DNA of 64,000 nt from Macrostomum lignano (GCA_002269645.1 NIVC01000837.1:1-64000), one strand, 5' to 3'. Positions 34,704-51,334 are shown, counted from the stretch's first letter. Numbers and translations: made by a program. Notes: generated by a model from the letters alone, not told the origin.

Positions 34704-37526
34704 ATGCTTGGAACTCGAAGAATTCTGCAGATTTTGTTGCTGCTTTCAGTTGGTAAGGAATTTTTGCAAGCCTGGCTTAGCGGGGAAGGATGCATGCATG
34801 AGAGGGAGAGAGGAGGCGAGAGAGGAGGATTGAGGGCGAGAGAGGAGGGTTGAGAGAGAGAGAGAGAGAGAGAGAGAGAGAGAGAGAGAGAGAGAGAGAG
34901 AGAGAGAGAGAGAAAGAGAGAGAGAGAGAGAGAGAGAGAGAGAGAGAGAGAGGAGGCGAGAGAGGAGGGTTGAGAAGGAGAGAGAGGAGGGTTGAGAAGG
35001 AGAGAGAGGAGGGTTGAGAGGGAGAGAGAGGAGGGTTGAGAGGGAGAGAGGAGGGTTGAGAGAGAGGAGGGTTGAGAAGGAGAGAGAGGAGGGTTGAGAG
35101 CGAGGAGGGTTTAGAGAGAGAAAGGAGGGTTGAGAGCGAGAGAGGAGGGTTGAGAAGGAGAGAGAGGAGGGTTGAGAGCGAGGAGGGTTGAGAGAGAGAA
35201 AGGAGGGTTGAGAGCGAGAGAGGAGAATTGAGAGGGAGAGAGGAGGGTCGAGAGGGAGAGAGGAGAAGGCTGGCAAAAGAGGAAAGCTTGTGCCAAGAAC
35301 ACTTTCGAAGCCCCCAGATTGAAATAAAAATCTCACTCGCTCTTCAGCCGCGAGCCCCTTGTACAGCAAAGGAGTTCCCCGTACGAAGGGCGCAGGCAGC
35401 CGAGCCGGCGGCAGCACTCGGAAAAACAGCCGCTACGGCTCGTCCGGAAGCGGCGGCTTCTCCTCGCTGCCAATGCTCATCCGCAGTCGGTTCTCGTGAG
35501 CAGTACTCATATTAATCATTTTAACACCCACCTGATTTAGCCTAAAATATAATATCATTCGCATCTCTACATACCCCTGGACCAAGTTCAACTCCACAAC
35601 AAATCAGAGAGCTCCATTAAAAAGAGACCCACCTCACTACTCTAGGCGTAGGCTAGTCAACTCCACAGCCAATCAGAGAGCTCCATTGCAAAGAGACCCA
35701 TGTCACTACTCTAGGCGTAGGCTAGTTCAACTCCACAGCCAATCAGAGAGCTCCATTGGAAAGAGACCCACCTCACTACTCTAGGCGTAGGCTAGTTCAA
35801 CTCCACAGCCAATCAGGAAGCTTCAAAACAGACCCACCCAATCCCATACCCAGCTTCCTAGCCAAGTACACAGCCTACCGCCTCGGCATCATTCTGGCCT
35901 CAAAGGACTGGCGAGCAGCCCATCCAGAGTACAGCGACAGCATGACCCTGTGCTTCAGCGTGCGACACGACCTGCCCAGCTGGCTAAATGACTCAGTAAT
36001 GCAGCCCTGGCTCTACCAGAACCGTACGGTACTCGGCCTACACGTCTGCCCGTTGGATAACCAACTGGACAAGGTGTACTGTTGCGGCTTCAAGGACGGT
36101 CAGGAGTGCTGCACCTTCTGGGATGAGTAAGTCATACATGCATTATTTTCTTTGTTTTCTAACTAATAATTTCCCCCAATTTGATGAAGAATCCTGTATG
36201 GAAAACCCGCAGCTTCAGTCGGCTGTCTTCAGTTGTTGTCGGAGTTGCCCTGGCTGGCATCAGCTGCTCAGTGTTCGCCGCATGGCTGTTTAGGTGGTCC
36301 AGGAGACAGCTGAGCTGGAGAAGGTGAGCGAGTGCAATGATTGGATCTCCCTGTCTAACCTACTCTCTCCCTGTCTAGTCTACTCTCTCGCCCTACCTTA
36401 TCTACTCTCTCTCCCTGCCTCATCTGCTCTGTCACCCTGCCTCATCTACTCTCTCTCCCTGTCTCATCTGCTCTGTCACCCTGCCTCATCTACTCTCTCT
36501 CCCTGCCTCATCTACTCTCTCTCCCTGTCTCATACTCTGTCACCCTGCCTCATATACTCTCTCTCTCCCTGTCTCATCTGCTCTGCCACCCTGCCTCATC
36601 TACTCTCTCTCCCTGTCTCATACTCTGTCACCCTGCCTCATATACTCTCTCTCTCCCTGTCTCATCTGCTCTGTCACCCTGCCTCATATACTCTCTCTCT
36701 CCCTGTCTCATCTGCTCTGTCACCCTGCCTCATATACTCTCTCTCTCCCTGTCTCATCTGCTCTGTCACCCTGCCTCATCTACTCTCTCTCCCTGTCTCA
36801 TCTGCTCTGTCACCCTGCCTCATCTACTCTCTCTCCCTGCCTCATCTACTCTCTCTCCCTGTCTCATACTCTGTCACCCTGCCTCATATACTCTCTCTCT
36901 CCCTGTCTCATACTCTGTCACCCTGCCTCATATACTCTCTCTCTCCCTGTCTCATCTGCTCTGCCACCCTGCCTCATATACTCTCTCTCTCCCTGTCTCA
37001 TCTGCTCTGTCACCCTGCCTCATATACTCTCTCTCTCCCTGTCTCATCTGCTCTGTCACCCTGCCTCATCTACTCTCTCTCCCTGTCTCATCTGCTCTGT
37101 CACCCTGCCTCATCTACTCTCTCTCCCTGTCTCATCTGCTCTGTCACCCTGCCTCATCTACTCTCTCTCACGGTCTCATACTCTCTCTCCCTGTCTCATC
37201 TACTCTTCTACCTGTCTCATCTACTCTCTCCCTGTCTCATCCACTCTCTCCCTGTCTCATCTACTCTTCTACCTGTCTCATCTACTCTCTCCCTGTCTCA
37301 TTCACCATAGGCAGCTGAAAACCTATCAGCATATTAAACCATAATTTTGCCCGTCCCAATCAGCGGAGCGGGCAGCCGGGCCAGCTTATTCAGCGCTCGC
37401 AACCAAGCAATGGACGAAGCGGCTTCTCTGCCAACTGGTCCTGAGGAGTGCTCGTATTCGTCGTCGGGGGCACCGGCGCCGCGGAAGGTCGGAGTGCGAC
37501 GGAAGGGTCCGCCGACGACGGCCTAG
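34704..37526 (+). CDS. Six-Cys single-pass membrane protein (Shisa-like/CX-type, STMC6), paralog 1, 247 aa
   Basis: Exons 34704-34752 (signal MLGTRRILQILLLLSVA), 35348-35495 (G/S/R-rich), 35854-36126 (TLC..VCP..YCCG..ECC), 36213-36323 (TM SVVVGVALAGISCSVFAAWLF), 37364-37526. Phases 1,2,2,2, total 744 nt in frame. Confidence 0.75.
34800..35265. repeat. (GA)n microsatellite plus GAGAGGAGGGTTGAGA repeats, intron 1 of paralog 1
   Basis: Direct inspection. Confidence 0.9.
35582..35815. repeat. About 70-bp tandem repeat (about 3.5 copies) containing AGCCAATCAGAGAGCTCC
   Basis: Direct inspection; intron 2 of paralog 1. Confidence 0.8.
36350..37305. repeat. CT-rich compound minisatellite (CTGTCTCATCTGCTCTGTCACCCTGCCTCATCTACTCTCTCTCC), intron 4 of paralog 1
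   Basis: Direct inspection; explains ORF 36294-37310. Confidence 0.9.
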
Positions 37527-37547
37527 CAACGGCCGAATTGATCGCAT

Positions 37548-50400: not shown

Positions 50401-51334
50401 TTTCTCGAGTTGAAGATGCTTAATGTTTCAAGCTTTTGGGAAACTATAGTGACAAAAATGAACCAGCTAAAGTTAGAGTTTACCGTTAAAGTTAATGTTA
50501 ATAGTTTAGAAGATCACCTTCAATAGCTATAGTTTTCCTGTAAAATAACTGTCCTTGGGCCAAAATCGTCAGTTCTGTCGTGTACAACTGTACATGGCAT
50601 GTACCTGGGTGTGATATTGCCCTCAACTGGCTCCATCCAATGTGTGAGCTAGGCTAGCGCTGAACAACGTCTAGTATGTTCATTGCATAGATTTTTCGCG
50701 CTACACTCCATACTTTCTATTTATCAATAGAGAAATTCTGACATGATGAATCATTCGCACTCAATTTACCTGTGATACTAAAAAATGGGTCAAACTTCAT
50801 GCAGGCATACCGAGACCGGTTTCTGGCTTGGTTTGCCTCTGTCAGTCGGCCATTATCACACATCGTACTTTCCCACCACTCTGTGTGCACAGACGTTTCG
50901 TGACATCTTTGCGATATGTGATACATTCTACGATTCAAATCTTTATTTGTATACTTTTCTCAGTAGTCATAATCGAATCTGACAATACCAACGGAGGTCA
51001 AAATCCGCCCAAGACTCAATCATGTGTACATGTAATATGCCATGTACACCTAAATTTCAGCCAATCGCAAAGCGCCATAGTATCCGTGGCGCACACCAAT
51101 CCGGCGCTACAAATGTCAAACGTTCAAGTAGCAGAACCGATTGTTGTAGCCGCGGGTGGCCATGATAATCGGCCGACCTTGGCTCCAGCTTCAAATGACT
51201 TGATCAACAAGCCGACTGAGCAGCCGTTAAACTACTACGGGCAGGAGCAGCAACAGCCGCCACCATACCCGATTAATCTGTCGCAGCAGCCGCCGCCTCC
51301 GGCCTACTGGGATGTCCAGTCCCAGCCAGGCTAA
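44489..51334 (+). CDS. Six-Cys single-pass membrane protein (Shisa-like/CX-type, STMC6), paralog 3, 300 aa, PPxY tail
   Basis: Exons 44489-44543 (signal MKLELINCLIVLILLLAIA), 45589-45739 (GARGGGRFSGGRYSSRYSGSRSSGRYG), 45961-46278 (TLC..FVCP..YCCGEEDGQRCC), 50256-50360 (TM VIGLCVGVVLGCCVCVYIA), 51061-51334 (PPPY, PPAY). Phases 1,2,2,2, total 903 nt in frame. Confidence 0.82.
44610..45556. repeat. Near-perfect minisatellite, 24 bp unit TCAGGTAGATTGTCATGCAGTGAG, about 39 copies, intron 1 of paralog 3
   Basis: Direct inspection; explains ORFs 44579-45562. Confidence 0.97.
46295..50185. repeat. Minisatellite, 23 bp unit CATGAGATCAAGCTCATAACAAT, about 3.9 kb, intron 3 of paralog 3
   Basis: Direct inspection; recurrent variant blocks (GAGAAGAGTGAAATC) show higher-order amplification. 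Confidence 0.97.

Follow-up and report, generated by a model that had tools for sequence, protein, structure and literature searches.

STMC6 proteins are described in two publications (PMC6125347, PMC5578492) as proteins with a single transmembrane (TM) segment, a C..C..CC..CC ectodomain, a membrane-proximal aromatic pair and tails with PPxY motifs. Shisa proteins hold Frizzled and the fibroblast growth factor receptor (FGFR) in the endoplasmic reticulum (ER) (PMC5578492). The channel auxiliary subunits CKAMP/Shisa6-9 are characterized by a C-terminal class-I PDZ ligand of the EVTV type (PMC4778035). WBP1L and CYYR1 recruit HECT ubiquitin ligases of the NEDD4 family by means of PPxY motifs and control the degradation of cargo or ligase (PMC11399591). 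Here, a stretch of 64,000 nucleotides from the flatworm Macrostomum lignano was analyzed (GCA_002269645.1 NIVC01000837.1:1-64000, in the following called the window; coordinates are counted from its first nucleotide). Positions 34,704 to 51,334 carry a tandem array of three paralogous genes, named gene 1, gene 2 and gene 3. Most likely they encode small type-I Shisa-like (STMC6) proteins which would act as PPxY adaptors. The identification of the genes and of their family is made with high confidence.

Genes 1 and 3 are complete open reading frames (ORFs) of five exons each. All introns are of the GT-AG type, with phases 1,2,2,2. The protein of gene 1 (34704-37526) comprises 247 and that of gene 3 (44489-51334) 286 amino acids (aa). 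Their exons are as follows (a slash marks the exon boundary).

34704..34752, + strand: gene 1 exon 1, ATG and predicted signal peptide MLGTRRILQILLLLSV; donor TTG/gtaagg, phase 1
35348..35495, + strand: gene 1 exon 2, G/S/R/Y-rich with RFS at its end; phase 2 donor; 100% match to P0005
35854..36126, + strand: gene 1 exon 3, 273 nt, helix-forming basic/aromatic stretch and six-Cys Shisa-type domain
36213..36323, + strand: gene 1 exon 4, TM helix and basic stop-transfer sequence
37364..37526, + strand: gene 1 exon 5, short cytoplasmic tail without PPxY; stop codon TAG
44489..44543, + strand: gene 3 exon 1, predicted signal peptide MKLELINCLIVLILLLAI; phase 1
45589..45739, + strand: gene 3 exon 2, GSSSGARGGGRFSGGRYSSRYSGSRSSGRYGSSRGSGYS...KRFS; phase 2
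46003..46278, + strand: gene 3 exon 3, 276 nt, six-Cys domain; acceptor as in the annotated protein P0001
50256..50360, + strand: gene 3 exon 4, Cys-rich TM segment and basic stop-transfer sequence; helix in the AlphaFold2 (AF2) model
51061..51334, + strand: gene 3 exon 5, tail with PPPY and PPAY; stop codon TAA

A tblastn search of the whole window detected exactly three copies of the Cys domain, all on the + strand (~35909-36124, 40635-40739 and 46058-46276). The copies of genes 1 and 3 matched each other with E ~3e-28. The Cys-rich motif lies in + strand ORFs at 35756-36130 (gene 1, carrying TLCFSVRHDLPSWLNDSVMQPWLYQNRTVLGLHVCPLDNQLDKVYCCGFKDGQECCTFWDE), 45944-46282 (gene 3) and, in a shorter version, 40536-40745 (gene 2). 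The domain of gene 1 reads TLC-x31-CP-x8-YCCG-x6-CC-TFW with the sequons NDS and NRT, and that of gene 3 reads TLC-x31-CP-x9-YCCG-x6-CC-SFW with the sequons NSS and NRT. The hydrophobic N-terminal exon of all three genes is a predicted signal peptide. An earlier note on this stretch had proposed three same-strand genes with a common plan of five exons and phases 1,2,2,2. Three domain copies on one strand are indeed present, but only genes 1 and 3 are intact in the window and follow this plan; gene 2 is interrupted there by a 202-bp deletion. The order given in the same note (signal peptide, G/S/R/Y-rich exon ending in RFS, Cys exon, TM helix with basic stop-transfer, tail) and the NRT sequon in genes 1 and 3 were confirmed. 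Its motif TLC-x31-CP-x9-YCCG describes gene 3; in gene 1 the second spacer is x8, and in gene 2 the TLC is a chance match at a spacing of x36.

For exon 3 of gene 3 an upstream acceptor at 45937 was considered and rejected; the public protein P0001 uses 46003. With acceptor 46003 the length of exon 3 is 273, 276 and 276 nt in the three paralogs. AATAAA occurs at 38103 downstream of gene 1, past a 24-bp minisatellite, and ATTAAA at 51502 downstream of gene 3. A duplicated copy of the locus is found on contig NIVC01000836.1 (L001), and a third contig is NIVC01000169.1 (L002). Gene 3 of the window and of the duplicated contig differ at 5 positions in 858 nt, with nearly identical introns, which makes the ratio of nonsynonymous to synonymous substitution rates (dN/dS) uninformative for this pair. 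The annotated protein Mlig028763g1 (P0003) shows a frame change directly after CCSFW, at the end of gene 3 exon 3 (L002 ~11800). A 1-nt gap in a GGG run relative to the window would fit this change, either as an assembly indel or as a true frameshift.

Both intact genes were found in public databases. Gene 3 matches M. lignano BOX15_Mlig028763g3 at near-identity (E 4e-182), and gene 1 is 100% identical to UniProt A0A1I8HBP1 (P0005) within the part covered by this entry (93% of the model). In GenBank, the annotation of the assembly builds on a transcriptome guided by RNA-seq (StringTie/TACO/TBONE; PMC5730564). Thus, the junctions of gene 3 already have transcript-based support. Genes 1 and 3 are not new as sequences; they are catalogued but uncharacterized proteins, and the description of the cluster as hidden and possibly undescribed is not supported.

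A profile of the three Cys-domain/TM regions was run exhaustively with HMMER against 1.84 billion representatives (E<1e-3). This search yielded 67 proteins, and those checked have the same architecture. A word-indexed protein search with the family profile returned 2 matches, its prefilter being too weak; taxonomy was taken from cluster look-ups. Homologs of the same architecture occur in at least 8 protostome phyla. Their sources include molluscs (bivalves, gastropods, a chiton and an octopus), the nemerteans Lineus and Tubulanus, the annelid Paralvinella, the bryozoans Bugula and Watersipora, the brachiopod Lingula, the rotifers Rotaria and Seison and the priapulid Priapulus. M. lignano itself contributed two further paralog groups, Mlig001147 and Mlig020245, which UniProt names 'Shisa N-terminal domain-containing'.

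The proteins of this subfamily start with a signal peptide, followed by a low-complexity G/S/R/Y stretch of the A-R-G-G-R-G-G type, a small hydrophobic/basic stretch, the Cys domain, the TM segment and a P/Y-rich tail. The consensus of the homologs is P-x-I-C-x-N...N-G-T..G-x-F-x-C-P-x(8-11)-Y-C-C-G-x6-C-C-x-F-W-D-D-x-G-R, and the TM helix is often terminated by Cys. The pattern C-x31-CP-x8/9-(Y/N)CCG-x6-CC, with six Cys arranged as C..C..CC..CC, is common to gene 1, gene 3 and gene 2 of L001. All three genes have FW after CC-x, at the place of the CCxFWDDxGR of the homologs. Among 34-65 homologs C2 to C6 do not vary, and C1 is conserved in at least 90%. Architecture statistics were obtained from 46 full-length-like proteins, namely 43 homologs and the three gene models. 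G+S+R+Y make up a median of 59% of the N-terminal region, and an N-glycosylation sequon lies shortly before CP in 43 of the 46. Of 36 tails with 30 aa or more (homologs and the three gene models), 26 carry the motif [PL]PxY; gene 3 contains PPPY and PPAY, gene 2 PPRY and PPPY. The intron between Cys domain and TM segment has the same position and phase 2 in Bugula (TGG GAC GA/gtaagt) and in the three M. lignano genes (TGG GAK GA/gtragt), which therefore supports common descent.

Between the low-complexity segment and the Cys domain, a hydrophobic stretch of small residues followed by an Arg run is conserved (in a homolog, for example, WKTAAAVGVVFGLMSYKSRR). In gene 3 it corresponds to residues ~70-90 (window 46003-46065). 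AF2 predicts a helix here with a predicted local distance difference test score (pLDDT) of 65-77; in M. lignano the stretch is too short and too polar for a TM helix.

For the family assignment, profiles and structures were compared. The Pfam family Shisa_N (PF13908; gathering cutoff 22 bits) was matched by 45 of 65 homologs scanned, with a best E of 2e-8. The nearest M. lignano paralogs P0006 and P0007 scored 23.9 and 24.0 bits, above the cutoff, as did several other homologs; the paralogs Mlig001147 and Mlig020245 exceed it. Membership of the window genes in Shisa_N is supported at the level of the family, and solely by transitivity. The CYYR1 model (PF10873; gathering cutoff 31 bits) was matched across almost its full extent by 6 of the 65 homologs at E<0.01, at best with E 2.7e-6. 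The best CYYR1 score among ten homologs scanned individually was 24.0 bits, below the cutoff, and the window genes gave no match to this model. A profile search of the PDB returned the N-terminal Cys-rich domain of mouse Shisa-3 (5M0W) as the only real match, the other matches being TM-segment noise. E was 2.4e-4 when the profile included the TM segment and fell to 3.7e-5 when it was limited to the ectodomain; CP, CCG and CC were aligned. AF2 with the family alignment predicted five beta-strands and a TM helix (pLDDT 85); the helix spans residues 74-107 of the domain+TM construct with pLDDT >90. The ectodomain-only model showed an extra N-terminal helix (pLDDT 73). A Shisa-like/STMC6 architecture, as the earlier note had proposed, is thus supported by sequence homology beyond the motif.

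The subfamily resembles the Shisa family in its type-I single-pass topology, its proline-rich tail and its CP...CCG...CC core, which corresponds residue for residue to that of Shisa-3; Shisa_N is its best Pfam family. In contrast to Shisa proteins, the Cys domain of the window genes is preceded by a long extracellular segment rich in G, S, R and Y and by a helix, and a conserved N-glycan sequon stands before CP. Furthermore, no EVTV-type class-I PDZ ligand was found at the C-termini of the three proteins (...PPTTA, ...AVSRR, ...QSQPG). With the group of CYYR1, WBP1, WBP1L, VOPP1 and TMEM92 the subfamily shares the membrane-adjoining YCC...(Y)CC, Cys within the TM helix or close to it and tails with PPxY, and one isoform of an oyster homolog is named 'CYYR1-like' by NCBI. 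The ectodomain of CYYR1 measures roughly 30 aa, whereas that of gene 3 is far longer (~130-145 aa). The subfamily also differs from this group in the sub-gathering scores for CYYR1 and in gene 1, which lacks PPxY.

Gene 2 is interpreted as a decaying paralog which is dead in the window copy; in the copy of the duplicated block it is intact. The following parts were located in the window.

39082..39142, + strand: gene 2 exon 1, MLCNRNISAVSWALCIAITA, weak signal peptide; donor CTG/gtaaga, phase 1; identical in L001
40236..40344, + strand: gene 2 exon 2, S/R/G-rich, ends KFP/gtgagt, phase 2; identical in L001
40634..40741, + strand: gene 2 exon 3 remnant, 3' half only, VYGLFVCPIEPGREDRVYCCGEEDGQRCCSFWE; junction of the 202-bp deletion at 40634-40639
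41055..41165, + strand: gene 2 exon 4, TM segment and basic stop-transfer sequence
41634..41922, + strand: gene 2 exon 5, Ala/Ser-rich tail with PPRY and PPPY; stop codon TAA

Exon 1 had not been placed in the earlier note. Window 38300-40639 aligns with L001 4186-6594 and window 40634-41403 with L001 6797-7589. Consequently, about 202 bp are absent from the window. The deletion took the acceptor of exon 3 and the 5' half of this exon including the first conserved Cys, which leaves the six-Cys pattern incomplete. The sequence upstream of the junction is intronic, including 'MYTLC' at 40536. Since the true 5' half of exon 3 is deleted, this TLC is intron that is in frame by chance, and it stands 36 residues from CP instead of the expected 31. 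The donor of exon 2 is in phase 2. The only acceptor that opens the Cys frame (tcag/GC, 40534) needs phase 1, and every acceptor compatible with phase 2 meets a stop; no join is possible without a frameshift. The cryptic donors GGAA/gtgtgt (40313) and GTTA/gtagca (40331) would restore the frame. They were rejected as weak and non-conserved, and their product lacks the first conserved Cys.

In L001 gene 2 is an intact ORF of 280 aa with GT-AG introns and phases 1,2,2,2. Its exon 3 is located at L001 6629-6904, and Asn replaces the Tyr of YCCG. The same 202-bp deletion is present in L002 at 100% identity and is therefore not a one-off assembly slip. P0004, a UniProt model from another M. lignano assembly, contains a frameshift in exon 3 of gene 2. 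Unlike for genes 1 and 3, no AATAAA or ATTAAA was found within 1.2 kb of the stop codon of gene 2.

P0004 is a read-through chimera of paralog 2, with the frameshifted exon 3, and paralog 3. Its entry name 'C-type lectin domain-containing protein' looks unfounded. At the deletion junction a CCG(T/A)AC microhomology was noticed. The adjoining part of gene 2 intron 2 (window 40600-40640) contains GGTTGCGCACGGAATCGAACCCCCGTAC, which, read as its reverse complement, looks like the T-arm and 3' end of a tRNA and may be a short interspersed nuclear element (SINE) or another tRNA-derived fragment. It was rejected as a tRNA; ARAGORN detected no tRNA in the whole window.

Genes 1 and 3 are 40% identical. 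For this pair dN/dS is ~0.46 overall and 0.44 in the Cys-domain exon, at a saturated dS of ~1.3. Among the paralogs dN amounts to 0.5-1.3 in exons 1, 2 and 4, and dN/dS is below 1 in every exon. Due to the saturated dS there is no evidence of positive selection and little power to detect it. A different picture was obtained for exon 3 of the intact gene 2 (L001) and gene 3. Here, 3 of 276 nt differ (dS 0.017), whereas the other exons of these two genes are saturated (dS >1.4, dN 0.9-1.3), and the similarity breaks off a few bases at most from the exon ends. This pattern indicates recent exon-scale gene conversion between the tandem paralogs 2 and 3. Therefore, exon 3 was homogenized rather than diversified.

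Genes 1 and 3 together with Mlig001147 and Mlig020245 form a Macrostomum clade in 156 of 200 neighbor-joining (NJ) bootstraps. Across this clade the C1-C2 spacer has 31 residues versus 15-23 in nearly all other members. The exhaustive search revealed only ~5 paralog types in M. lignano. Clade and common spacer thus speak for a modest expansion in the Macrostomum lineage. By these comparisons the genes belong to an uncharacterized protostome-wide subfamily that is modestly expanded in this lineage; the earlier note's reading of the family as lineage-specific is not supported.

The proposed protein would carry, behind its signal peptide, an extracellular G/S/R/Y low-complexity segment, a short basic/aromatic helix and the six-Cys Shisa-type domain. 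This domain is predicted to be N-glycosylated, presumably contains three disulfides and would present FW at its membrane end. After it would come a single TM helix, accompanied by juxtamembrane Cys and basic residues, and then a cytoplasmic tail predicted to be disordered. Along the secretory or endosomal route, the extracellular and TM part may engage membrane proteins as clients. Through their PPxY motifs, the tails of genes 3 and 2 could recruit NEDD4-type HECT ubiquitin ligases, which carry WW domains. Ligase recruitment might then control trafficking or degradation of the client or of the ligase, as for WBP1L and CYYR1. Gene 1, without PPxY, would be a variant unable to recruit a ligase. 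The PPxY-ligase mechanism in particular is drawn by analogy and is proposed tentatively, at slightly less than even odds.

Several results weigh against the reading as Shisa-like PPxY adaptors. Shisa_N is the top match of gene 3 (18.7-20.0 bits) and gene 2 (14.8-18.0 bits), but both scores stay below the gathering cutoff, and gene 1 has no Pfam match at all. In Foldseek comparisons with the PDB, run with and without the TM helix, 5M0W was not significant (E 3.3-4.4, TM-score 0.41-0.43); it ranked second of 350,542 chains in both runs. Gene 1 lacks any PPxY motif, as do 10 of the 36 long-tailed proteins. The RNA-seq-based GenBank annotation of the duplicated contigs does not call genes 1 and 2. 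This is weak evidence, because the pipeline excluded transcripts overlapping repeats (PMC5730564). For Mlig028763, Mlig001147 and Mlig020245 neither functional or expression data nor any mention of the genes turned up in the papers and supplements searched. Finally, other modes of the Shisa family, i.e., ER retention of Frizzled and FGFR or a role as auxiliary subunit of an ion channel, may apply.

These modes lead to the strongest of the rival explanations, in which the proteins are classical Shisa/CKAMP-like factors. Their Cys-rich domain would bind, retain or gate a receptor or channel (Frizzled/FGFR, glutamate or GABA receptor) independently of a ligase. The only solved structure detected is the Cys-rich domain of Shisa-3, retention of Frizzled and FGFR is established for Shisa proteins (PMC5578492), and gene 1 at least needs a mode other than PPxY. 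However, the C-termini lack the EVTV-type PDZ ligand, the similarity to Shisa_N is limited to the core CP..CCG..CC segment, and PPxY is the commonest recurrent feature of the tails in the subfamily. Hence, this explanation is considered unlikely for the array, and the PPxY adaptor is preferred.

It is still less likely that the subfamily constitutes a distinct undescribed class of STMC6 proteins. Its conserved RGG/SY-rich extracellular segment would then serve a separate function, such as multivalent binding of matrix or glycans or release of a processed peptide, and the tandem expansion in Macrostomum with its gene conversion of exons would reflect a specialization of this function.

The earlier note had favored a lineage-specific, fast-diversifying family of surface receptors with sensory, recognition or immune roles. 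The strong divergence of the paralogs outside the Cys skeleton, the Macrostomum clade with its common spacer and the tandem arrangement agree with such a family. On the other hand, the same architecture is spread over the protostome phyla listed above, and the number of paralog types in M. lignano is small. With dN/dS below 1 in every exon and saturated dS, positive selection is not demonstrable. Moreover, exon 3 of genes 2 and 3 is homogenized, one copy is decaying, and the divergent parts are low-complexity or disordered sequences which drift quickly in all STMC6 proteins. Diversifying receptors are therefore judged improbable.

Pei and Grishin (2012) reportedly grouped the CX module within STMC6. 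That the genes encode CX-domain proteins (PF01705, the nematode-type CX module) agrees with the six-Cys single-TM architecture and with the automatic UniProt name 'CX domain-containing protein' of P0001, P0002, P0003 and P0005, but it is the least probable explanation and the proposed CX link could not be confirmed, since the three proteins gave no CX match in current Pfam-A at E up to 10 and CX is absent from the 21 Pfam families matched by the 65 homologs at E<0.01.

Introns and spacers of the cluster are full of minisatellites which lie between the coding pieces, as had been noted before and as Tandem Repeats Finder confirmed. The program delimited the following arrays, to which no strand is assigned.

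46293..50185: 23-bp minisatellite, ~169 copies, filling gene 3 intron 3
44607..45557: 24-bp minisatellite, ~40 copies, filling gene 3 intron 1
36346..37301: 22-bp minisatellite (290-bp higher-order unit), filling gene 1 intron 4
39185..40159: CT-rich 14/23/37-bp minisatellite in gene 2 intron 1

The 24-bp minisatellite 3' of the gene 1 stop codon (window 37549-38040) probably lies within the 3' untranslated region of gene 1, because AATAAA follows at 38103. It measures ~0.5 kb in the window and is several-fold longer in L001 (~1060-3700). Its copy number is therefore sharply different between copies or assemblies. In the M. lignano genome 15% is simple or tandem repeat and 180 Mb lie in duplicated blocks of at least 95% identity (PMC5730564). 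A genome of this kind accounts for the minisatellites as well as for L001 and L002 as near-identical contigs.

Other features were noticed around the cluster. Exons of an API5 (apoptosis inhibitor 5) homolog are located at window 1344-4771 (- strand), a long field of repeat-derived ORFs at ~12600-14900, and a single-exon ORF with a U1/JAZ-type zinc finger, ZMAT2/SNU23-like in appearance, at 19477-20136 (+ strand). A C2H2 zinc-finger ORF is found at 32421-33641 (+ strand), and a 45-bp satellite with ~27 copies lies downstream of the cluster (53790-54994). Like this satellite, the ORF field at ~12600-14900 is a large tandem array.

The current understanding is not overturned by these results. 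The analysis corrects the family label of catalogued flatworm genes from CX to Shisa-like/STMC6, maps the exons exactly across introns choked with repeats and marks one copy as a pseudogene that arose by deletion. The genes sample a wholly uncharacterized, protostome-wide branch of the Shisa-like/STMC6 superfamily, whose vertebrate members regulate Wnt and FGF receptors, AMPA and GABA receptors and NEDD4-type ligases. M. lignano allows transgenesis and RNA interference and could thus be used to find the role of this branch.

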